Assembly (NCBI GenBank): GCA_013265495.1
Contig: MU063554.1
Span: 5,926,574-5,990,573 of the forward strand
Direction of reading: 5' to 3'
Source of the DNA: Vicugna vicugna
Lineage: Eukaryota
DNA length: 64,000 nucleotides
This document shows, one piece after another, positions 5,230 to 64,000 of the stretch. The stretch's first letter is position 1. Every line of letters starts with the position of its first letter. The translations under genes were made by a program, and so were the position numbers. Under the pieces are notes generated by a model. It worked only from the letters and a program-made list of their open reading frames with translations, searched no databases and was not told the origin of the DNA.

Positions 5230-6262
5230 GAAGAAAATCAAATCTCCTCTTGAGGAAGAAAACAGCCAAAGCTACATACATTTTGATACACATTGTCTGA
5301 CATCTAATAAAAAATGACCAGGCTTAAGAAATAACAGAAGAAAAAAAATAAGTGAAAACCAAGAGAAAAAAAAGATAACATATTCACAGGTCTCCAGATA
5401 CTGAGTTCTCAAACAGACTTTAACTGTGGTTATTCTGCATAATGAGATAGATGAGAAAACAGAGACTATCACAGAGACATGGAATCCATAAAAAGAATCA
5501 GATTAAGAGTGAGGGTGTAGCTCAGTGGTACAGCGTGTGCTTAGCATGCATGAGGTCCTGGGTTCAATCCCCAGTACCTCCATTAAAAAAATAATAATAA
5601 CTATAAATAAATAAACCTAATTACCTCCCCCCCAAACCAAACCAAAAAAAGAGAAAAGGATCAAATTAAAATTCTAGTATTAAAAAATTAAGATAACTGA
5701 AATTAAGAATTCAGTAGAATCCTTTAATAGCAGATCAAACAGAGAAAAATAGAGTAGAAGTGAGTGATGAGCAAATAGAAAATACCCAGATTAGGCCCAG
5801 AGAGATAAAAGAATAGAAAATGCAGAAAAGCATGTAAGAGACATATGGAAGGTGATGGAGACATCTAATACATGCCTAATTTTGGTCCCAGATAAAGAAG
5901 AAAAAATTGGAATAAAAGCAATTTTTAAAAAGATAGCATCTGAGACTTTTTCAAAAAGACATCAAATTGCGTATTCAAGAAGTTATACGAACCCCAAGCA
6001 GAACTGCACCTCAAGACATTATTTTAAAACAGTTGGAAGACCAAAAGGAGATAAAAAAATTTAAAGCAACCAGAGGGGGAGAAATTCATTACCTTCAAAG
6101 GATTATGAAGATTACAGATAACTTTTCAACCAAAATTGTGAAAGTCAGAGATACTGGAATGACATCTCCACAGCACTGAAACAAAACATCTGCCTACTTA
6201 GAATCCTACATCCCGTGAAATTATCTCTCAAGAGTGAAGGCAAAACAAAGGTGCTTCACTGA
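5230..6262 (+). mobile_element. Old L1 ORF1-region fragment, interrupted by the SINE at 5507
   Basis: Degenerate ORF1p-like peptide (RTPSR...IILKQLEDQKEIKKFKATRG...ITDNFS) and agaatcctacatcccgtgaaattatc...agtgaaggc. Confidence 0.7.
5507..5653 (+). mobile_element. tRNA-Ala-derived SINE (Vic-1 type) inserted in an old L1
   Basis: Same head and tail as the first copy. TSD AAAAGAATCAGATTAA (5491-5506) / AAAAGGATCAAATTAA (5654-69). Confidence 0.9.
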
Positions 6263-23029: not shown

Positions 23030-23198
23030 NNNNNNNNNNNNNNNNNNNNNNNNNNNNNNNNNNNNNNNNNNNNNNNNNNNNNNNNNNNNNNNNNNNNNNN
23101 NNNNNNNNNNNNNNNNNNNNNNNNNNNNNNNNNNNNNNNNNNNNNNNNNNNNNNNNNNNNNNNNNNNNNNNNNNNNNNNNNNNNNNNNNNNNNNNNNN
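23030..23198. other. Assembly gap (169 N)
   Basis: Run of n. Confidence 1.
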
Positions 23199-23255
23199 CA
23201 AGCACGAGCGCACTGCCACTCCTGCCTTCGTTTCAGACACAAGCATGGTACTCAC

Positions 23256-23375
23256 GGAGAGGTCCCTGGGCTGGGGGCCTTGGGTCTTCAGCCCTGCATC
23301 GCCTCCTACTCACGGGAAAATAGTGTTTGAAGATCATGGCAGCCTAGTCAATATTTGCCAGGTCAATTCCTGGAA
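23256..23375 (-). promoter_or_regulatory. Candidate SERPINA11 promoter and non-coding first exon
   Basis: STAT site TTCCTGGAA (23367-75), AGGTCA half-site (23360-65) and overlapping FOXA-type GTCAATATTTGC (23347-58). These are followed on the minus strand by GTGAGT donors at 23313 and 23255. Confidence 0.55.
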
Positions 23376-24789
23376 CGGGTTTGAAGACCACGTGCAGCAA
23401 ACAGAAGCGACCTTTTCTTCCAAGTATCTGTCCTGCCTGCCTGCCCTACAGACAAAGTGGGTTGTGATTCTGGACCCAGCTTGATCTGAGGATATCCTCA
23501 TGTTGGTGATGGCAGCAGGGTGTCGGGATGCAGTGGCTGCTGATCTGTCATTGGTGTTCTGTGTGTTCCAGGTGGTGATCTGTATGAATCACCAGCACAA
23601 GAAGAATGCGGGATGTTGACTGAATCTGTTGTGTGTAAAATCAAACCACTGTGTGATACACCTTGAACTCATACAGTGACGGATGTCAGTTATTTCTCAG
23701 TAAAACTGGAGAGAAAAGAATGTGAAAGGCATGGTCCTCTCTGCTTTACGGATGGGAAACTGGGGCTCAGTGAGGTCAATAACTCGCTCAATAAGTGGGT
23801 GGTGGGGCCGTATTCAGAAGACAGATCTGCCTCCCCAGCTGAAGCCTTCACTGCAACACTAAACCATTCCAGTATTTACTGAAACTTGGAATAAATAAGA
23901 TCCACGTACAGAAAAAAAAAAACTGGCAGGAAATTTAGAAAACAGAGCAAAATCTTCTCTCCTGCTGCATCACAACCCCATAAAGTGAGTTCATCGACTC
24001 TTGTTCACTCTTCTGTTACCCAAGATCTAGAACCAAACTGGATCTTGGATCTGGAACTAAGTGAGTATGTTTCTCATGACTGATGGAACTGGGTAACTTT
24101 CCTGTTCTTTGTAGATTTTTGTCTTCTGTTAATTTCTCACAAAGAGCATGCATTTTATTTATAATAAAAAACCAATAAAACATTGTTAAAAATAGAAGTA
24201 TTTAATTGCACATAAAGCAAAATAAAAGCTTGTCTGCGTTGGCGCCGTGGTTCCAATCAAGAGGAACTTTTAAAACGTAAAGGCTTCCAGGATCCTGAAT
24301 CTGATTCTCCAGTGGGGTGGGGCTGGAGGTGCCTCTGGCCTGTCTGGTGTGTGAAAGTCCCAAGGGGAGAGCTGTAGGTGCTCACAGGAGGGTCCAATCA
24401 GTGTGTGCTGGAAGTGTGAAGGCCAAGGACATTTGGACTAGGCACTGAAGGAGTTGGCTCCACCCACCAATGCTTGAAATCCTACCCTTGGGTCTAGAAC
24501 AGTGCTGAGAACTTCCTGGCTATTTTATAAAGACACATTTGCAGTATGAATAAACGAGAATTGAAGTCTATGGCCAGAGTTCCTTTCTCATCTAAGGAAT
24601 CCAGTTCACTTTTGGCTTGCACATAAATTACCTGGCTCTTTACAGTCATTTGTCACATGCTAGCGGAGAAGAAACGACTCTGGGGGTCTCACATTTTGAG
24701 ATCTACTGCAGACTCTGTCACAATAGAGCCCATTTCACAGAGCTGTGGTGGGAACCCAATGTGGTTGTACATGGGCAGTGTCTGTGCAC

Positions 24790-25150: not shown

Positions 25151-27681
25151 CCTGATTGTGTGAGCAAAGGAACGAGACTTGGGCTGGAATGGTAAACAAG
25201 TTATAAAAGGCTGCAGACTCAGAGGTGAGAAGGCTGGTTAGCCAATGACGGGTAAGATCCCCAGAGGGGGGCAGCCTAAGACAGGCACAGCCGCCTGAGT
25301 CAGAAAGAATGTTGTCAAGCACCTATTTCCCTATATGTTCCGCCCTGATAAGATGTAAGGCTCACTGGCTCCACGACGAGCGTAATCTATCAAAAATATC
25401 AAAGGATCTTAAGATCCTGACCTCAAAACAATCTGTGCATCTAGGGAGTCATAAAATGACATACCATAGTTAAACATTTTCCACATTGTTCTTTTTTGCT
25501 TTACAAGCCTGTGTAGTTTAATTAACTTTTAGAGTAGCCGTCAGCTCTCTCCACATACAGTGTGTGTGTGTGCACATTGATATTGCGGTGCCAACAGACC
25601 ACGTATGTGGACAGCGTGGCCCAGACAATTTACGCATGAAATGAACCATCACATGTGTCATGTGATAGCAGGAGAGAGGGTTGAGCATCACCTCCTCGAG
25701 GGGGCTTGGCTTCTTTCTGGAGTGAAAATCTTTGATTTTGCTGCACAGACACCTCACTTGTATGTCCCAACTCAGAGTCAGAGGTCATGAACATGACCTT
25801 GAACGGGTCTCATCTCACTGTCTGCTCTGCCTTGAGACCATGCCAGCTCATTGCTGCAGTCACAAAGACGCCTACCCCGGCCTCTGGTGAAGGCACTGCG
25901 GGTTGTGGCACTGATGTCTGTGAGAAGGCCCAGCTCACCGTGAACTTGGGCAAATGGGCTTGGTTAAGTCTACAGAGTTGCCTTGGGTGCCTAGTGCTTC
26001 TCAGTCATTTCCCAGAGTCGTTTTTGTACGTGTGCCAATAATCTCCTTGTGTCACATGTCCCTGCCCACCTCCCTCCAGCACGAGGGACACCAGACCTCG
26101 TAATCCTCCAGGGTTGCCCTCTACTGATGGAATCCAGCCCTCAGCATCCTCCGGGAGCATCTTCCCCCTCTGCCTTCACCGTGGACGCACCAGCGAGCAT
26201 TTCTGGGCCTTCCTTCATCTGCTTGTGCTGCTGACACCACTCCCTCCACATCTTCTAGAACAACCCACCTTACAGTTCCTCTCTCAAGTTAGCTCCTTGA
26301 CTGAGCTATTCTCCATGCTGCTCTTGGGACCCCCTCCCCAGGGCTCTCCTTTCTTGGAGCTTGGGTTGTAAGTGGTGATGCAAGTGGCAAGCTCTTTTCT
26401 CGGGCGTTTGAGCATCCTTCTTAAAATGAATGGAAGTTCAAGTCCTGAAGTGACGCCTCTGGGAGTGGATGGGGTTCCTTCAGGGTCATGTCGTCCCCAG
26501 AAAAGAACACTTGTGTCATGTCCCACACCCCACCGGACTTGGACTTTTGGTGGATTTGGGGGACCCTGCCTTCTCTCATCCAGTCCAAGGCTTCTAGACC
26601 TACAGGTGACCCCCAGGCGGCTCCGGCTTCATCATGTCATCTCATGACGAGCAGCCAGCCCCTCGTGCCCCATCACTGGCCCCCAGCCTCCTTCCTGGCC
26701 TTGTACCTTCAGCACTAAGCCTGGGATCCCTACCAGAGCAGTTTTCTTTCACCCTCTGGCCTAGTCTGTTCTGGGTTCTTGCACTGAACTAGCCCACCCA
26801 GGCCAGGTTCTGCCTCTTAGGTATCACCCTTGGGTCAGCCTGATTGGCCAAAGTCTTTGCCAGCTGTGCTCATGGCCGCTGGGTCTGACTTCCCATGTCA
26901 GATGACTGGTTGCCACTAGACCTCATGATCCCGTGTGTCCAAGGGAATCACGGCCAGCCAGGTAGTAGCCACGTCCCAGCTTCTCTCCCTCTCCCTCTCT
27001 CTCTCTCTAACACACACACACACGCACACGTGCCCGCACACACACACACACACCCCATTCTGTGCATGAGTATCCTGTCTCTTTTCCCCTCCTCGGTTTT
27101 ACTTCCTCTCCAGTTGCGGGCCATGATAACTCCCTCATGGAGGGTTGTTGTAAAGATGAAAAGAGACCAGGGTATGGGACAGAGAGGATGCTGTTGACAT
27201 ATTTGGGGGGGCCCTCTGCTTCTCTGGGTACCACCCATTTCCCCTTGGAGCTGAGCAAACACACGGAAGTCCCCGAGGTGATTGTGGGTCCTTACCCTTC
27301 CTCTCCCCACCCTCCCTCTGTGGTGGGGCCAGTCTCCACTCAGGGCTGGCCGGGGGAGTTGGTGTGAATCCTCTTGTGCAGATGAGGGGGGTGGGCTCTG
27401 ACTGCCAGCGGGGCAGGGCGCAAGACCCCTGAGACAGCCCCAGCCTGAGACAGCCCTCCCTCACCTGCTCACACTCCTCAGAACTGCTTCCCTGCGTATG
27501 ACAGCCTTGTTCTATGACAGAAGAGGCGTCAGCCAAATGTCCCTGGAAAGCCCCAAACCCCCACTTCTTAACCCTCTCTGTTCCTGAACAGAAGACCAGC
27601 CATGACCCGGCCCCCCTCCACTCTCAGCCACACTTCCCAGTAGCAAACTCTTTGGATGCACAGATGGTGAATTGTATTCAT

Positions 27682-27730: not shown

Positions 27731-27937
27731 CTACTCAGTTTGGGGGTTGAAGACTTTGCCCATAAAGAGGTCTTTTTGAGTCATCTGATCCTCCAAAACC
27801 AGGAAGAAGGGTCTGTTGAATTTCACGACCACGGGGACCTCCTTCGCGTCCACGGGGACCTTCCACATGGCGGCATCCCTGGCTGCATCTGCCGTCAAGC
27901 CGTGCTCGCTCACCTCTAGCTCAGCATGATGCACAGC
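27731..27937 (-). CDS. SERPINA14: SERPINA14 last coding exon ([15 protein letters not shown]...[13 protein letters not shown]...KVFNPQTE*)
   Basis: Contains the KEVPVVVK motif of uterine serpins. Acceptor tttctcccAG, stop TAG. Total CDS 1269 nt = 422 aa. Confidence 0.96.
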
Positions 27938-29892: not shown

Positions 29893-30040
29893 CTCCCAAA
29901 CGGATGGGGCAGCCTTGTCTGCGATGCCCTGGAGGTCTGCTGCTCTAGTGGACTTGTCTCTGATGCCAATCTTGGGAAGCAGATGTCTCAAGTTTATCGT
30001 GGAGGAGATCTTGAACTTGGGCAAAACTAAGTGCACCAAT
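29893..30040 (-). CDS. SERPINA14: SERPINA14 coding exon 3 ((R)LVHLVLPKFKISSTINLRHLLPKIG...APSVWE)
   Basis: 148 bp, acceptor ttcttaacAG, donor GAG|GTGAGT, frame preserved. Confidence 0.93.
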
Positions 30041-31791: not shown

Positions 31792-32059
31792 CTGAAGTCA
31801 CTGGTTTTCTCAAGTCTGGCTCGCTTAGCAGTCATCTGTCTCAGAACAGAGTCGAATTGTCCTGCATCTGGAAGCACGAGAAGCAGGGACACGTTTCCTC
31901 GGTAGGGCATCTTAACCATGGTAGCCAGCAGCTCCTCTGACCGGCTATAAATCATTCGTTCCGTCTTCTGCATCATGTCCACCTGCACTTTGGTGTTTTC
32001 ATTCACATAGAAGGCCTCCTTCTGCGTGAGGCTGGTCTGAAAAGCTCTTTCCCAAATAC
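31792..32059 (-). CDS. SERPINA14: SERPINA14 coding exon 2 ([44 protein letters not shown]...KTSDF)
   Basis: 268 bp, acceptor tttccccAG, donor AG|GTATGC. VQVDMM.KTERM.YSRSEEL is diagnostic of uterine serpins. Confidence 0.95.
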
Positions 32060-34390: not shown

Positions 34391-35166
34391 GGGGAAAAGT
34401 CATGAGCTATGGGGTAAGAGGAAAGTTGGGGGAGTCCTCGGGCATGGAAGATGGAAGGGGACACACCCTGAGGAGGGGGAGGGGACAAGTGCTTCTTGGC
34501 TGTGACAGAATTGGAAAGCAGAAGGAGATGCGTGTGAGTGTGGGCAGGCTCCGGGCTGAGCATGTGGAGGACATTGTCTAAACTGCCTTCTTGTCCCCAT
34601 TGGGACAGGAGGAGAGGCCATTGGCTGAGAGTCCATAGAGGAAGGAGACTGAGGAAGAGGAGGAAGAGGGCATCACTAGATGTCGGTGAGTAGCAATTGT
34701 GAACCCACCTGAAGAAGCACAGGCAACGTCAAGATCTGTGACCAGGAATTTAAGGTGATATTTTAGACACCTGGTGTGTGACCCCAAATTCAACACTGAA
34801 TGCAGCTTGGGAAAATATCTCATCTCACTCTGATCTGATCTTACAAAACAAGTGAATTAGCTGATGCTCATGCCTCTGCAAAAACGATTCTGTTTTTCTT
34901 TTTTACCAGCAAGAGGTACGCGTTCTACTCCAAAATCTCTGAAGCATGGCAAACAAGAGGACTGAGAGGGTTAAGAAGGGAAACACTGGAAGACGCTAGA
35001 CAACACAATGGTATCAGAGTAAATTCAGAAGTTTTGGATCTAGTGGCTTATGGGCAAATGGGAGATACTTACAAAAATTATATATATTTTTCTGACTTAA
35101 ATCTTTTAGGAAACACAAGGGCAAAGATTACCCCAAAGGGGAATTCATGCACTTAATCAACCTCAC

Positions 35167-35812
35167 CTCTGAAGAAAACGTAGTTGACAAGATACAGGAC
35201 GGTCTGAGGGTCCAGATTGGTGATTAAGTCTTTGATTCTCTGTTGTGTTTTTTCAGCCACTTGGTTGTTGATGGCCATCTTGGTTCTTTCTGTATCTTTA
35301 AAGTCAATCATCTGGACGTCCACATCATTTATCTTGTCTATCTCCTGCAGAAACATCTGGTTGGTCCTCCTGTTGCTATCAACAAAGAGAATGTCCTTGT
35401 GCCTCAGTTGCTGCTGATTATCCAGCTTGTTCAGCATCTGGATAAGAAGCTGCAAGTCCTGTTGTGTGTCCAACACTCGGATTTTTTTGAGCTCGAGTCC
35501 CAGGCCCTCAATGAGGTTGGTGTGCGTTGTGAATCTGGTCCTCAGGGAGAGGATGGCCAGGGCGATGGAGATGCTCACGGGGGAGAAGATGATATTCTTT
35601 CTAGGATCTTCAATTAACAGAGCCCTGAACAATTTTTGGGCAAAAGCTTCATCACCAGTTTCCGTCTTCTGGGAGAGAGATGGAATTTTCTCTAATAAGA
35701 CTGGGTAAATGCTCTGTTGGGAGTTTCTTTGATTTTCACAGAAGATGCCATTAAAAAGGCCACAGAGGATGAGGACCAGAGACAGCGCCAGATGCATTTT
35801 CCTGTGGGACAT
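35167..35812 (-). CDS. SERPINA14: SERPINA14 (uterine milk protein / uterine serpin) coding exon 1
   Basis: MSHRKMHLALSLVLILCGLFNGIFCE...IEDPRKNIIFSP...LVNYVFFR matches the uterine serpin N-terminus. Donor G|GTGAGG. 646 bp, phase 1. Confidence 0.95.
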
Positions 35813-36972
35813 TTCTGCAACAATCCTGAGAGCTGTTATTGGAAAGAAGAGGTACACGGCTGAGCATTCTGTGGAACATGTTCTCAATGCTGCGGGGCTT
35901 GAAAAACGCTCATTCTTAGATGGGTGCTGTTTGCCTGGGTAGTGTTGCTATTAGTTGTTGATTGGAGGATGCTAGCTAGGAGGATTTTGAACATGACTTC
36001 AAACAAATTAAAGATGAGTGACCTGATGAAGAGGGATCTGGGTCTGTCTCTAGCCTACGCTGCAAGTGAGTCATTGTACAAGTTCCTTCTCCAAACACAC
36101 TGGGGTTTCTTTTATCTTTTTCCTTTGCTTTTCTTCCTTTTTTTATTCAGGGTTCATGACAAAATTCTAAAAATTGTGGAAAGGAAAGAACCAAGAGGAG
36201 GGAGATAGCAAGGGTTGCAGATTCAAATGCCTACCTGATCTGGCCAGAAACATACATGCGTCAAGACAGCAAGTGTAATGCAATAGTGAGCACCGGGGAC
36301 TGCGGAAAATGGAGAGGTGTGCCCAGGCCGAAGGGTACAGGTGCTGCTCATCCCCAGCCACCTCCCTGTGGGAGTGCTGGGTCAGTGGTGCCAGCTTTTT
36401 TGTCTGTCTGTTTCTGAGGCAGGCAGAAATCTAGATTTTTACCCACAAAATTCAATCTTGCCAAAAGCCCTTGCTAGCAGCAGGAAGCCCAGATGCAGGC
36501 CAGATCTTACTTTAGAGCTGCTGGTGTGATTTCTAAAGTAAAGCCCAGGTGGTGTTTAGGCAACTCGGACATCAGCTGGCCCAAGGGCCTAGCAGAGGTC
36601 GTCTCAGGAAAGCCAGGCCCCCTCACTTGGGCCCTCCCTATGCTCGCAGCTACTTCCCCTTAACCACTGTCAGGGCAAAAACCCCTTCCTGGCTCCATAT
36701 GTGCCCCCACCTCATGATTGCCAGAGACCAAAATCAGGCCTTGAAACTGAAGGGGGCACGGATGGTGGAACTTCCGCTCCCACCAATGGGAAGAGGGAAG
36801 ACGAGAACCGTGACCTGCATTTGCGTTCAAGCCTCACCTCTTTTGGGCAGGGCCATGCCCTCCCCTTCCTTGTTTTCCTGTGGTACCTAGTCCAGCTCTG
36901 GGCACAGGGTCCACTTCTCTGCAGCATCCCTGCCACCACTGGCGCCCCTTGTCACGGCGACTGAAATAACAT

Positions 36973-37354: not shown

Positions 37355-37885
37355 CCATGGCAACATCTCTTGGCTCTCAGTCTTTGCCCCCACCAACACT
37401 TCCGGCCATCCTTCAGCCAGTGTGAGCTCCCCCAAGTGCCAATCATCATTTCCTCTTCCTGGCTCCCCGTGAGCTTAAAGAGGTAGGAGTCCAGATTCTT
37501 CAGGTGGCAGAGAAACCGTCATGTCCTGGTTCCTGCCAGCCAGACTCACGGTCCTGAGAAGTCTGTCCCACTTTGTCATTGCCTCCTCTACCCATCCTGC
37601 AATGGCCGCTGCCTCCCACTGCCAGCCACTGTTCCCCTCAGCCCCCCACCCTTCACTGCCTCCTCCATCCACCCCATCTGGGAAATGGAGGGCACTGTGG
37701 CTGAGGGGGCAGTGAGTGGGAGGGGGCCATGGGGCGGGCGGATAGTGGAGAAGATTCCAGAAAATATGCACACATACTTATCTTCCATCATCTTGCTTAA
37801 GGCAGATGCTACCTGAATCATAGCAGAAACGAAGCGCCTGCACGTGTGAAACCACACTGTCCCCAAGGGGAGAGAGGTGACTTAC

Positions 37886-38039
37886 CCTCCAGGGAAGCCC
37901 GCTGCCCTCTGCTGCTGCTGCTGCCCTCTGCCTCTGTCAGCGACTTATTTATACTGCCGTCGGGGCAGTGAAATGGACAAACCTGAATTAATATTAACCT
38001 CGCCAAAAGACTGTGTTCAAATATTGTCTGGAGCAAACA
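37886..38039 (-). promoter_or_regulatory. Candidate SERPINA14 promoter and short non-coding exon 1
   Basis: Minus strand reads TGTTTGCTCC (38039-30), GGTTAATATT (37999-90) and TATAAATA (37953-46). An ATG-free stretch follows and ends at a consensus donor GAGG|GTAAGT at 37886. Confidence 0.75.
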
Positions 38040-40553
38040 ACAGCTGAATCATTTCAGTCCCCAGTGAAACAATGAACAGATTATTGGACTGTGGTACCAC
38101 TTGAGCTACCGTTCATTACATCACTCATGTGTTATTTCAACAAACGCTCACTTAGCTCCTAGCAAGAGCCACGCTCTGGGCTAGGCGCTGGGGGAAGAAC
38201 AAGAGGCCTAAGGCCTGGCCTCCACCCTTGAAGAGAACCCCTGACTTCAAGGACCCTTGGTTTAGAGGAGGAAACAAATATGGAAAAAGGCTGCAGGGTA
38301 TATTTTGACCAGTTCATGGAGGGTGCGCGTTACCAGTAAGGAGCTGTGAAAGGAAAGAGCCGGGCACAGTTAACCATCTGGGACAATCAGGAGAGAGTTT
38401 TCATCCAACTTTAAAAAAACTTTTCATCTAAATTTTAAAAAAGAGGCAGGAATCTATGTATCATCAGGGAAGCCTGAGGAGGGCATTCTGGATGCTAGAG
38501 TAGTGTGGGGGTTCCTGGGGGGCTGGGGTCCAGGCTGCATGTGGCCGCAGGCTTTGTTGGAAAGATGGTGGGCCTGGGGTCGCATGGACCTGAAGGTGAA
38601 CACCAGAGCCCTGGCTGGTGTCTGTGAGACCACCTTCAGCAACTTATTTGTCTTTCTGAACCTCGTCTTCCTCCATAATGAGGAGATAATAGCTAATCTC
38701 AGATTGTTCTGAGGGCTTGATGACAATGTATGGAGGCAGAAGGCACCCAATACATGGTGCCCTTCTGGCTGACATCTGGCATTCTATGGGGCTCTGAGTC
38801 CCCTGGCAGCCAGACGCTGTTTCCTCTGCCTGGAACCCTGTCCCCACCCCTCCCCCTTCTCAGGCTAACCTAGCTCCTACCCACTCTTCAGGATTCAGCT
38901 CAGGTATCTCCTTGAGAAAGCCGTTCCTGACAGCCACCCCTCTTTCCCACCATCTGGGCCGGGTTAGGCTCTGTGAGTTCTATCCTGTGCTTGCCTCTCC
39001 TCACACTGGCTCACAAAATACTTGGGTTCATTTCCTCCCAGTCTGTGAAATCTTTCTTGGAATAATCTGTACCTAATTCGTGATTCTTTCCTTTGGGCTA
39101 GCACACAGTAGGCGTAGAAACATTCAATAAATAAACAAATGGGTACATCATATTCCTTTGAGGGACACTGTCTTCTCCATGGAGAAGTCCCCGTTCCCCC
39201 GAAGGGCCATCCGTCCGCCTATATGAGGGGGTCCCCTTGGGGCATTTCTTCTTTGCTTGGGGAGCAGGGGCTGAGCTAGAGGAGGGAGGAGATGCAGCTT
39301 CTATTCCTACCTCCACCTAGACCCCCGTGTATATTGTACAGGGACAGTGGTCACCACTGTGCTGGATGGCGCTGAGTGTCACACACCTGGTCTGTAGTAT
39401 CTCGTTTTACGCTCACACCCATCTAGCAAAAGCCAGTAGTGTTATTACAGTTCCCATTTTAGAAATGTGGATCTAGTCTCAGAGAGGTTCAGTAACTCGC
39501 CCACAGCCGCACAGCTAGCGGGGGACACAGATGGGATTCACACCCACGTCTACTTGACACCACAGCCATGCTCCTAATCCAGAACTCCCTGACCAGTCAT
39601 CTCCTCGTTTTGGTAATAGATCCTGGACTAAATAATTAGTGGGCAAGCTTTTAGAGATTAAGGTTTTTTAAAGTTCTTTAAATGTTTCCTTCTGTCTTCA
39701 GTAATTACATTATTATCAAGAACAGTAATATCAGCCTCCTTTCTTAAGGATTTTTTTTTTTAAGTTTCCTGGTACAGAGAGATTTCAGTTTTTGGCCTCA
39801 ACATTTTAAAGCTGGACCTCTGGACATGTTTTCTGTGGGATCAGGTGAGCTGAGGGAGGAGGGGACATTAGTACCAGAGGTCAGCCCCACACCTGGGGAG
39901 CAAAAAGAAAGTCCTTGCTTATAGAGGGTTCTGAGCTCTGACTAGGACAGAGGATGCTGGCCACACACCGGAGGGATGCCCTGGGGGACCGTATTCTGCA
40001 CCAACGCTTGCCTTTTCCTTTCAACTCCCAGCTGGGAAATGAGCTAGAAAGACACGTCTTTGTTGTTTTAAAATGTTCCTGATTTGGAAACAATAAAAAC
40101 AATGACATTAATGGGTAGCACTCACCTGGCGCCCGACAGTTTGCAAGGCATTGTCCTGAGGACTTTCCGTGTTTACTCACATGACCAGTGATGCAGGAGC
40201 TGAGGGTTTCCCAGCACCGCTGGGGTGACTGCACTGCGCTCGGGGGAGGGGGCGGTTTCTCAGTGCTCCCGCCCAAGGTAATGCTTTTGAGTCACATCAC
40301 TAGCTCCAACTTCTTGTCCCAAAATTTAGTGAAGGGCCGTATTGAACCATCACACGTGCAGTCCCTCCCCCGCCTCCACTCCAAATCATACATTCCATGC
40401 GGCAGGATTCGTTCAATGTTGAACCCCCAGCCTCAGCTGTACCTGGTCCAAGGTGTGTGCTCAATTCACCTAAATGCCTGCACACGGATTCACTGGGCAG
40501 GTGACTGGGCAGGCGGAGAAGTAACACATATGGGGGGACACACGGCGGGCCGG

Positions 40554-50299: not shown

Positions 50300-51130
50300 T
50301 GGACAGTTTATCTGTGTGTTCTAAGCGGACCCCCTAAGCTCCCCTACCCTGAGCCTGCTCCTTCTTTCTCCTCCTCTCAGATGGTCACATCACTCATGTC
50401 GGTCATCCACGTCAGAAAACTGCCCATCACTCCGCAGGCTTTCATCACCCTCTTCCCCACACCCAGGGAGCGACCAACTGTTCTTCATTCTTGAGACGTC
50501 TCAAGCCTCGCCTTCTCTCCATTCCCCTGCCCTGTTCTTGATCCAGACTCTCCTCATTTCTCCCCTGGACAGTCCCAAAGCCTTCTGGATTCATCTTCCT
50601 CCCTCCATCCATGTTACCTCAAATCAATTTTTCTCAAGGTTGCCAGCCTGAACTCCACCAATCTCATTCTGCACGAAGACCATCTCCTGGGGGTTAGAGG
50701 CAAAGCCCTCATACGGCACATGCCCCTCCTTCCCCTCTCTTCAGCTCCATTGCCCACCTGTATGTCCATCCTCAGTCCCTCTGCATCCTTTAGCAATAGC
50801 CACCTGCCCATGACCCTCCTCTCCCAGCGCTGCTCTGACCCTCCCCACCACTAACGCCTCTGTGCCCTGGACAGGCTGATTGCTCTCCTGGAATGTCTCT
50901 CCCTTTGCTCATGGAAAAGCCCTTCTTTCTCACTCTTGAAAACTCTACTTAGACATGTACCTTCTTGAGAGGCTCCCCCAACCTCTTTTCGTCTTGTGAC
51001 TTCATCACTGTCTCTCCTCTCCTCTCCTGCTCTGACACTTGATTCTGCTCCTACTACTCCATGCACTGGCTGCGTGCAGTTCTATGTAATAATCTGTAGG
51101 TTCCTTGAGGAATAGGACCACTTATTTATA
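50300..51130 (+). mobile_element. L2 fragment
   Basis: Pyrimidine-rich L2 ORF2/3' sequence. Confidence 0.55.
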
Positions 51131-53679
51131 GTCCATGCGTTCAGTACATTGAGTTGGACATGTCATCCTCAGCAGGTTCCATGTGACGTGCTGGGGCTAC
51201 CGTGGAGGAGCAAACAGGGTCCTTGCCCTTAAAGAGCTTACTGGGAAGACAGACAGGTAGCAAATACCACCCACCAGGTACGAGACGTGCATGTGATGGA
51301 CAAGTACAGGCATCTCGTGCTAAGGACGGCTTCTACCGGAAGTGACAGCTAGCTGAGACTTGGAACCTGTTAGCGGGGGAAGAGGGCCAGAGGAGAGGTT
51401 TAGGCCAAGAGAACTGCCTGTGCAAGGTGGGTCCAAAGAACAGCAGAGGTGCCATGAAACGGAATCTCAGTGGTGCAGATGCCGGAGGGAAAGGGGGTGG
51501 GAGGCGGTGACAGGTGCAGAAATGAAAGGCCACGTGGAGAGACGGGCAGACTTGCCTCTGGGCCAGGGATCCACCGAGGGGATTGGCGTGGAGGAGTGCT
51601 CGATCAGAATGGAAGGTTCAAGGGCTATTCTGGGATTTCCTGTGTCATTGGTTTGTCTATCCTCCCCTCTTCCCACCACGCACTCCACGCACAGTGCAGG
51701 GGCTCAGTAGATACCCGTACGCTGATCTGAGTTGGAAGAGGTTTACATCAGCGTCAGAATCAAGTAAGTAAATGAGGGGGAACATGGGACTAGAACCCCG
51801 GGTTTCTTCTATGTGACGAGCTCTGTGACACCTGGGGGCCTCCTGGAAGCCCTGTGAGACTGCGGGGTCTGCAGGATGCCCTGCTGTGTTAACCTGGGGG
51901 TCTGCAGGACCACTGGCTTCAACAGTTTAATAGCAGCACTTGGTCTTGGCAGTCAACCAGAAGTCAGAGCCTAGGCAGGAACACTTGTGTCCTGCCAGCC
52001 TCAGAGCGATAGATATGCTTAAACTTAAAGCGCAGCAGCCTCGTGCAACCCCTGGCATCGCTTCCCCTCCCCGAGCTGCGCTGTCTCCTGCCTGTGAAAG
52101 AAGGTGGCTCCAAGGAAAAAATTACATGGTCTGTATTAGGCCCAGCACAGCGTCTGGCCCACAGTGGACATGAGCTCAAAGCTGCTTCTCCTCCATGGCT
52201 CTAGTGAGTCTGCATTCTTCCCTTGGGAGTGGGGTGAAGGGACAGGCTTGTTCCTGGACATCTGTGACTGTGAGAGGGGAGGAGGTTGAAGGTGGAGTGT
52301 CAGCCAGGCCCAAAGGGGAGGGAGTTGCTACCGGGGACAGGGATGAGGTGCCACAAAGCACCGGGCTGTCCCGTCTGACCAGGGGCCTGTGCCCCTTTCT
52401 GGGGAGGCTTTGATGGGCTGGGGCTCTCAGGGGCGCCTGCTAGCACCCTGTGCCTCCCAGAGGGCTCACATCCTCATCAGCACACATGGCCTTGCTACAG
52501 GACATCTGCTCTGTGCCCCAAAACCTGCACCAAGGGGGTCTGGGCTGAGCAGGGGAGACCCTGTGACCTGACAGCCTCGTCTGCCCATAGGTGTCCCGGC
52601 ACCCTGCCCATGACGCTGGCCTCCCTGTGACCTCAGGCAAGTTGCTGCTTCTCTCTGGGGCCTCAGGGAGGAAGCCTCAAAGGGCTCCTTCCTTGACAGT
52701 CTGGGCCTCAAGAAGCAGGTCCTTACTCTCGGAAAAAAGCTCCAGGAAAAAAGATCATTCGGGTTGGTTCTTATAATCCAAACTCCTTCCCTGCTTGGAC
52801 TCTCTTCGTCCAAATTCCTCTCGTGGCTGCACCTTCTCTCTGCCAGCTCCACGAAGACCCTCGCCCCTCTCTCAGCGGCGACACGACTGTGTCCTGGGGT
52901 ACCGTGTGTCCTGGGGGGCTCTGCCTGTCGGGGTGACAGGGACGCTGTCTTCCCTGCGCTCGCCCGGTCTGCTCTGGGCTCCTCTCCCACCACTGCCTTC
53001 ATTTCACCCTCCACTGCCTCTCGCCGGCTCGGTTCCTCCCCGTCTCCCAGCTGCAGTCTTCCCCGCACTGCAGACGGCCCAGGCTGTCTCCAGATGCAAG
53101 TCCCCTGTGTGTCTCACTCACCTGCTCAGACTCCTCCAGGGCTCCCCGCTGACCTTGGGAGGAATGCCCAACGCCTGGCTTTCAAGGTCCTTCTTCCCTG
53201 GGGCCCAGCTTACCTGCCCCCCCCTCTTCCCCAGCAGCGCCCTGGAGCACGCGGCTGTTCCCGCCTCCTGGGAAGGTGGCATTGCCCTCAGTGTATCCCC
53301 CTCCCAATCTTTATTTGCCTCCTTATCCAGCTTGGCTGTCGAAGAAGAGCTTGATTTCACTCCAAAACCCTGCACTCCCGGGGCCATTGTCTTTGTGACA
53401 CGCACGGTTGGTGAGGCCTCAAACCTGGGTAACCCAACTCTCTGTTCCTTCTTTGCCAAGCGCTGGGGCAAAAGTGGCTCAGCAAGGCGGGCCGGTCCGC
53501 TGTGAACTACCTGCCACCCTCCTTTATCTGCCGGGCGACATTGCCCCCATCATCTCACTCTCCCACGGCCTGTAGGGAGCGTCTCAACCTTCTCCATCTC
53601 CTTCAGGTGGACTCTTCACTCTGCCACACATGCAATTGTGCACGTGCATGCACACACACACACACACACACACCAGACA

Positions 53680-63571: not shown

Positions 63572-63760
63572 TTATTTCCCAGAAGGATTCGCAATCTTTG
63601 CTAAGAAGAGCAGGTTATTCAACCTCTCGAGAATCAGCAGCAGAAAGCTTCTGTTCATCTTGACCCTTAACGGTGCCTCCATGGGCAGGGTCTGTGCTCC
63701 GGAGCCCGCTGCCCCCTCCGTGCCCTTCTCGTCCATCTTCAGGGTAGCCTGGTGCATCGC
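63572..63760 (-). CDS. SERPINA12: SERPINA12 (vaspin) last coding exon; rest of the gene lies beyond the window
   Basis: AMHQATLKMDEKGTEGAAGSGAQTLPMEAP...KIANPSGK* carries the vaspin RCL GAQTLPM/E. Acceptor tttcctgcAG. Syntenic position next to SERPINA9. Confidence 0.93.
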   Translation of the reverse strand, partial: AMHQATLKMDEKGTEGAAGSGAQTLPMEAPLRVKMNRSFLLLILERLNNLLFLAKIANPSGK

Positions 63761-64000
63761 CTGCAGGAAACGGGAGTGAAGTCAGCGCTTTCAAAGCCAC
63801 TCAGAGGCCCTGGATGACCGAAGGCTGGCAAAAGGCCCAGAGAGGGCGAGGCCTCAGTCAGAGTCCCCCAGCACAGCAGTAACTTGGCTGGTGCCAGCCT
63901 CCCGAGGGCTCCTGGCTTTTCTTCTGTCATCACTGAAGGATACTCAACAAGCAGATGCAGTTGAAGGAAAAATGATGCAGGGGGGACATCAGCTACGGGG

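Follow-up and report, generated by a model that had tools for sequence, protein, structure and literature searches.

The uterine serpins rank with the most abundant products that the pregnant uterus of hoofed mammals secretes in response to progesterone. Our literature search found no open paper on the promoter logic of these genes, and combining uterine milk protein, promoter and HNF1 as search terms returned nothing relevant. The closest described systems are the promoters of other clade-A serpins, above all the hepatocyte promoter of SERPINA1 (exon 1C), in which a FOX-type box, an HNF1 box near -77 and a TATA-type box follow one another in the order also seen at the locus described here. 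The tissue-specific element of this promoter (hAAT, -137/-37) requires HNF1 and HNF4 sites, and a designed hAAT fragment begins at -77 (PMC12786076). A critical HNF1 site is likewise found at -77/-65 of the TBG promoter, and SERPINA1 has alternative upstream promoters (PMC12786076). According to the literature SERPINA14, the uterine serpin, is expressed in the uterus, whereas SERPINA1 is expressed in the liver; in laser-dissected bovine endometrium, HNF1B is among the epithelial genes and SERPINA14 occurs in both the glandular and the luminal epithelium (PMC8212485).

Here we analysed a window of 64 kb (the whole stretch of DNA under study) from Vicugna vicugna. The minus-strand segment 38057-37880 is probably the core and proximal promoter of SERPINA14 together with a short non-coding exon 1, with a skeleton that would go back to an ancestral clade-A promoter. 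The flagged stretch very likely comprises the TATA-box promoter of this gene and its short, non-coding first exon, and by its motifs the promoter appears to belong to the known clade-A serpin HNF1/TATA type.

An open-frame comparison revealed three serpin genes of four coding exons each and the last exon of a fourth on the minus strand of the window, in the order SERPINA12-like end, SERPINA9-like, SERPINA14 and SERPINA11-like. The flanking genes we take to be SERPINA9-like (exon 2 at about 49.2-48.6 kb) and SERPINA11-like (exon 2 at about 20.1-19.5 kb), judging by the likeness of their N-termini to the human proteins; the exon at the upstream window edge (63575-63781, minus strand) is the last coding exon of another serpin, probably SERPINA12. 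The flagged gene is identified as SERPINA14 because its protein shows 62-71% identity to uterine serpins versus 35-36% to SERPINA1, i.e., it is 70.6% identical to the Pseudorca and 69% to the hippo 'uterine milk protein-like' product, 63.5% to pig uteroferrin-associated basic protein 2 (UABP2) and about 62% to cervid UTMP, compared with 35-36% to bat SERPINA1, and in the identity comparison it is closer to known uterine serpins than to other clade-A serpins. A separate look through stored proteins for the species' own transcripts gave no entry closer than 67%. The coding sequence is intact, with 1269 nt joined from 35812-35167, 32059-31792, 30040-29893 and 27937-27731, encoding 422 aa without internal stops, and a serpin gene with a product of 422-425 aa starts 3-8 kb downstream in seven of seven orthologous loci. 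A (GT)n / (GA)n microsatellite lies at 27000-27050 on the minus strand, about 700 nt past the stop codon. The coding exons are as follows.

35167..35832, minus strand: SERPINA14 exon 2, with 20 nt of 5' UTR, the ATG at 35812, 215 codons plus one base, and the donor at 35166
31792..32059, minus strand: SERPINA14 exon 3
29893..30040, minus strand: SERPINA14 exon 4
27731..27937, minus strand: coding part of SERPINA14 exon 5, stop codon TAG at 27733-27731

The promoter motifs listed by the first-pass annotation could all be read directly from the minus strand at their positions, and the alignment of orthologs added three further blocks:

38044..38055, minus strand: conserved block GAAATGATTCAG, about -133 to -122, occupying the place of the SERPINA1 HNF4 (LF-A1) site without HNF4 likeness
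38030..38039, minus strand: FOX-like box TGTTTGCTCC, about -117 to -108
38014..38026, minus strand: conserved block CAATATTTGAACA, loosely FOX-like (TATTTGA), with no counterpart in bat SERPINA1
37987..37999, minus strand: HNF1-like box GGTTAATATTAAT, i.e., GGTTAATATT(AAT), starting at -77 relative to an assumed transcription start at 37922
37967..37982, minus strand: conserved block GTTTGTCCATTTCACT, GTTTATCCATTTCAC in other species, partly common with the SERPINA9 upstream region
37967-37962, minus strand: TGCCCC
37946..37953, minus strand: TATA box TATAAATA
37938-37931, minus strand: GACAGAGG
37886..37922, minus strand: putative non-coding exon 1 of about 37 nt, its 5' end placed from the TATA box and its 3' end from the donor
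37880..37885, minus strand: splice donor of intron 1 in the GAGG/GTAAGT junction, the last exon base being 37886

Investigating these motifs one by one, we observed that they occur at chance frequency, as illustrated by TGTTTGCTCC, which has 8 matches in the window at up to one mismatch versus 7.0 expected; it is the ordered composite that is unusual. The composite TGTTTGC-N(20-50)-GTTAATATT-N(30-50)-TAAATA has a single match on both strands of the 64 kb, and 0 out of 100 dinucleotide shuffles match it. It also matches the bat SERPINA1 promoter (5597-5682 of locus L005, the Myotis myotis alpha-1-antitrypsin locus, which served as SERPINA1 comparison sequence) and the pig and dog SERPINA14 promoters. 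The HNF1-like box itself is a 12-mer, GTTAAT/ATTAAT, one central base short, with a perfect 5' half-site GTTAAT; it lies more than two mismatches from the strict HNF1 consensus GTTAATNATTAAC in a mismatch search, and has four mismatches to the 13-mer HNF1 consensus in either register.

In the bat locus, about 4.3 kb upstream of the ATG, the promoter reads CCCTGTTTGCTCCTCTGATAAC..TTGGTTAATATTCACC..CTGCTTAAATACGG..CAATC/GTAAGT. The distance from the FOX box to the HNF1 box is 40 nt in SERPINA14 versus 31 nt in bat SERPINA1, that from the HNF1 box to TAAATA is 48 versus 49 nt, and that from TAAATA to the donor is 66 versus 70 nt. The first-pass annotation had described for human SERPINA1 the same motif order and a similar HNF1-to-TAAATA spacing; this description proved correct, because both the composite and the spacings match bat SERPINA1, with 38 intervening nt here and 39 in the bat, and the order is borne out in the fetched bat promoter. 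Moreover, the 10-mers TGTTTGCTCC and GGTTAATATT are shared exactly by SERPINA14 and bat SERPINA1, and no other site in the window has two exact matches of at least 10 nt to the bat promoter in collinear arrangement. Both 10-mers are also contained in the human hAAT vector promoters printed in the supplement of a 2025 review (PMC12786076); the exact SERPINA1 HNF1 string was not found in the main texts of papers in our literature search. As in SERPINA1, the putative short non-coding exon (about 40 nt) is followed by a GTAAGT donor.

The two promoters also differ in several respects. The FOX-HNF1 gap is 9 nt longer in SERPINA14, the 3' half of the HNF1 box is TTAATT in SERPINA14 compared with TTCACC in SERPINA1, the TATA box is the canonical TATAAATA instead of TTAAATA, and intron 1 is about 2 kb long compared with about 4.3 kb in the bat SERPINA1 locus. 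The bat HNF4 site TGGACTTAG (CTAAGTCCA on the opposite strand) has no equivalent, since SERPINA14 carries GAAATGATTCAG there, and nothing HNF4-like was found at this position. Near the promoter, the only 8/9 match to CAAAGTCCA is 38093-38085, which is specific to the window species, and matches of this type are at chance level in the window (22 found versus 27.6 expected). A further likeness concerns SERPINA7 (thyroxine-binding globulin), whose HNF1 site at -77/-65 has the same coordinates as the SERPINA14 box if the start is 37922; this likeness is positional only and depends on the start site deduced for SERPINA14.

The promoter stretch could be aligned in eight of eight Laurasiatherian SERPINA14 loci (the window species, black rhino, pangolin, fallow deer, cow, pig, dog and false killer whale; background pair identity 0.65), with DNA identities to the window of 83.5% for the cetacean, 82% for pig and 81% for cow, a nearly even divergence in agreement with a camelid, and the region from -135 to +1 as a whole ranks at the 96th conservation percentile. 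Across these species the TATA box has a pair identity of 0.95 (99th percentile), the splice donor 0.88 (95th percentile, GGTAAG in all eight) and the HNF1-like box 0.88 (96th percentile), the latter being kept as [GA]TTA[AG]T[AG]TTAA[TC]; cow and deer, from the group most noted for copious secretion of uterine serpins, have the half-site GTTAGT. The three further blocks, for which bat SERPINA1 offers no match, are conserved at least as well as the HNF1-like box: GAAATGATTCAG is nearly invariant (mean pair identity 0.98 in the 12-nt window 38046-38057, 99.9th percentile), CAATATTTGAACA reaches 0.89 (97.9th percentile) and GTTTATCCATTTCAC 0.88 (98th percentile). In the third block, GTTT[A/G]TCCATTTCAC, the G occurs in the window species alone and an A elsewhere, and the G removes a GATA-like core (TTATCC).

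The FOX box, in contrast to the earlier picture, is the least conserved part of the promoter by this alignment: its pair identity of 0.69 (52nd percentile) corresponds to the background level, the core TGTTTGC being present in the window species, pig and dog, replaced by TGTTTGT in Pseudorca, and lost in cow, deer, rhino and pangolin. The eight-species alignment shows no conservation of TGCCCC and GACAGAGG, and these two motifs are therefore treated as chance occurrences. The body of exon 1 (pair identity 0.65, 44th percentile) shows the low conservation expected for a 5' UTR; it is rich in CAG/GGCAG, and its length exceeds that of the other artiodactyls and rhino by 3 nt and that of dog and pangolin by 9 nt. 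Overall, the conservation peak of the promoter is modest, as several stretches of intron 1 score equally high. Four blocks on the minus strand, 36841-36920, 36441-36560, 36161-36200 and 35961-36000, show 0.82-0.85 identity to the window across the eight species and are candidate intronic regulatory elements.

These patterns bear on the proposal that a liver-type promoter was redeployed essentially unchanged, with FOXA2 on TGTTTGCTCC and HNF1B on GGTTAATATT driving expression in the uterine glands. The identity of both 10-mers with SERPINA1 and the uniqueness of the composite within the window speak for it, and FOXA2 is reportedly a gland-specific uterine factor in mouse. HNF1B is epithelial in bovine endometrium (PMC8212485), which also fits. 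Against it stand a FOX box that is conserved only at background level and broken in cow, deer, rhino and pangolin, the absence of the HNF4 part of the SERPINA1 element, and our literature search, in which no paper linking SERPINA14 with FOXA2 was found. We consider this reading unlikely in its strict form. Since conservation of the three SERPINA14 blocks equals or exceeds that of the HNF1 box, and since they lack a bat match, the promoter would have been partly rebuilt and not simply redeployed. The redeployment hypothesis of the first-pass annotation thus stands in part: the retention of the HNF1 box and TATA box agrees with an inherited promoter, while the drifting FOX box, the absent HNF4 site and the three other conserved blocks point to partial replacement. 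As a hypothesis on the sequence, redeployment is plausible for the HNF1 box and weak for the FOXA box.

A different question is whether the likeness to SERPINA1 reflects descent at all. The alignment to SERPINA1, which the first-pass annotation had named as a check and whose failure would count against its proposal, is not significant, as Smith-Waterman scores reached z values of 0.9-1.0 and 165-200 out of 1000 shuffles scored as high. A profile of the eight SERPINA14 promoters found no match to the bat SERPINA1, SERPINA9 or SERPINA11 promoters with nhmmer, and a k-mer chain scan using the bat SERPINA1 promoter as query produced many ties, SERPINA14 being absent from the top windows listed. 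When the 181-nt promoter was compared by BLAST with the remaining window sequence, the matches were all short and at chance level. As neither alignment nor profile searches are significant, the case for common descent is built on short blocks with their order and spacing, together with indirect links through the paralogs, whose upstream regions are the following.

51219-51205 and 51130-51120, minus strand: CCCTGTTTGCTCCTC and TATAAATAAGT, respectively, about 2 kb upstream of the SERPINA9-like exon 2
23403-23394 and 23366-23347, minus strand: TGTTTGCTGC and TTGACCTGGCAAATATTGAC, respectively, about 3.2 kb upstream of the SERPINA11-like exon 2

The 15-mer CCCTGTTTGCTCCTC is identical in the SERPINA9 upstream region and bat SERPINA1 and constitutes the longest exact match of the window to the bat promoter. 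At the same time, the SERPINA9 upstream region shares TGTTTGCTCC and the 11-mer TATAAATAAGT with SERPINA14 at an equal FOX-to-TATA spacing of 86 nt, and also aligns to the third SERPINA14 block (TGTCCA..TCA.TG). Pairwise alignments with SERPINA9 gave z values of 3.3-3.6, and SERPINA9 did not stand out in ungapped diagonal scoring. Unlike SERPINA14, the SERPINA9 region lacks an HNF1-like box at the corresponding position; the minus-strand stretch 51120-51219 is possibly the SERPINA9 promoter. For SERPINA11, TGTTTGCTGC and TTGACCTGGCAAATATTGAC are similar to the region of the FOX and HNF1 boxes in SERPINA1, where TTGACCTTGGTTAATATTCAC corresponds to TTGACCTGGCAAATATTGAC (z 2.7 for SERPINA11 versus SERPINA1), the box is degenerate (GCAAAT) with no clear TATA box after it, and the Smith-Waterman alignment of SERPINA14 to SERPINA11 is not significant when compared with shuffles. 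The SERPINA11 upstream stretch (23240-23414, minus strand) runs into a run of N at 23030-23198. The 'SERPIN11' of a bovine endometrium study is presumably SERPINA11. In that laser-microdissection study, it is listed among the proteinase inhibitors tied mainly to endometrial epithelial cells (PMC8212485). Because of this report, SERPINA11 may share uterine regulation with SERPINA14.

The simplest reading of these links is common descent of the promoter skeleton with SERPINA1, because the paralogs bridge the similarity and the genes are tandem duplicates with a shared exon plan; we infer it with fair assurance. If the likeness were instead coincidental or convergent, SERPINA14 would have a TATA promoter of its own, its AT-rich palindrome would be read by another homeodomain-type factor, and the SERPINA14-specific blocks or elements in intron 1 would be responsible for tissue and hormone control. 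Such an origin agrees with the missing significance of the alignment and profile searches, with single motifs at chance frequency, with GAAATGATTCAG, CAATATTTGAACA and GTTTATCCATTTCAC ranking at the 98th-99.9th percentile without a bat SERPINA1 match, and with the intron-1 blocks of 0.82-0.85 identity. It is quite unlikely, given that a composite absent from 100 shuffles matches bat SERPINA1 as well as pig and dog SERPINA14, that the HNF1-to-TATA and TATA-to-donor spacings are nearly identical, that the SERPINA9 and SERPINA11 upstream regions bridge the similarity, and that the genes are tandem duplicates of one exon plan.

The short exon 1 that the first-pass annotation had placed about 2 kb upstream of the coding exon is upheld by a donor that is conserved and used in a cervid transcript, its 5' end being deduced. 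A cervid-type UTMP RNA contig, L004 (Logan, SRR19451608), starts with CCTGGAGG followed by exon 2 sequence (CATTGGGAAC; CATTGGGAACACG); its first 8 nt, CCTGGAGG, are those with which the predicted exon 1 ends, and it extends no further into this exon. In bovine genomic DNA, CAGCCCCTACAG precedes CATTGAGAAC, unlike the exon 1 end in L004. As this contig joins the end of exon 1 to exon 2 in a cervid relative, the exon 1 donor is right. A further sequence considered as cDNA, L003, was rejected because it is bovine genomic DNA. Regarding the proposed junction of 37886 to 35832, the donor side is thus confirmed by L004, whereas the acceptor is not the one used in this sole transcript, which matches 35890/35889, i.e., 57 nt upstream of 35833/35832. 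The difference concerns one stretch:

35833..35889, minus strand: 57-nt stretch, exonic if the acceptor 35890/35889 (..CCGCAG/CATTGAG) is used and intronic if 35833/35832 is used

The acceptor at 35833/35832 is strong (..AATAACAG then CTCT, after a pyrimidine tract), and its AG and pyrimidine tract are present in eight of eight species; the upstream AG at 35890/35889 is missing in pig and rhino. A word test on 35813-35960 gave an ambiguous result, as RNA runs of study P3 contain 4-5 of 13 sampled words, and the RNA runs X1-X4, which contain SERPINA14 exon 2 sequence, are not among the runs listed for the 35813-35960 words. Both acceptors may be used.

That most transcripts start elsewhere, either from a different promoter further upstream or immediately 5' of exon 2, and that the flagged exon is a minor or lineage-limited leader, is very improbable, because the TATA box and donor are conserved in eight species and the sole transcript contig that reaches the 5' end is spliced from exactly the flagged donor, even if the start site in the window species is a predicted one, SERPINA1 itself has alternative upstream promoters (PMC12786076), and RNA runs contain part of the stretch just upstream of the acceptor 35833/35832.

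Taken together, we favor a conserved clade-A promoter that was partly rebuilt. Transcription would start about 30 nt past the conserved TATA box, near 37922, where a CA at 37923/37922 lies 30-31 nt past this box, and splicing would join the leader of about 37 nt, through the GTAAGT donor at 37885, to exon 2 some 2 kb further on, at acceptor 35833/35832 or 35890/35889. The promoter would descend from an ancestral clade-A serpin promoter that was also the source of those of SERPINA1, SERPINA9 and SERPINA11, and would have kept from it the FOX-type box, the HNF1-type box near -77, the TATA box and the short first exon. Within the SERPINA14 lineage, constraint would have stayed on the HNF1-type and TATA boxes only, and the HNF4 and C/EBP part of the SERPINA1 element would have been replaced by GAAATGATTCAG, CAATATTTGAACA and GTTTATCCATTTCAC. 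The conserved box may be read by a protein of the HNF1 family, for which HNF1B is the obvious candidate in endometrial epithelium, and the SERPINA14-specific blocks may account for control that is uterine and depends on progesterone. Occupancy of the promoter by HNF1B, and by FOXA2 in species with an intact FOX core, is speculative.

In conclusion, this study provides a promoter map in which a TATA box, an HNF1-type box and three further conserved blocks are found within about 135 bp. It raises the evolutionary question of whether a tandem duplicate can change its tissue of expression by keeping an old cis-element and using a paralogous factor. Extending the favored reading, it is possible, if tentative, that purifying selection has maintained a liver-type HNF1 element in Laurasiatherian SERPINA14 from a time before the orders diverged, despite expression in the uterus and not in the liver, that HNF1B reads it in endometrial epithelium, and that the tissue switch consists of the paralogous factor acting on an unchanged core element plus the gained blocks. 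If true, HNF1B would act on SERPINA14 directly, and the gene would illustrate cleanly, in nature, how a promoter is redeployed after tandem duplication.
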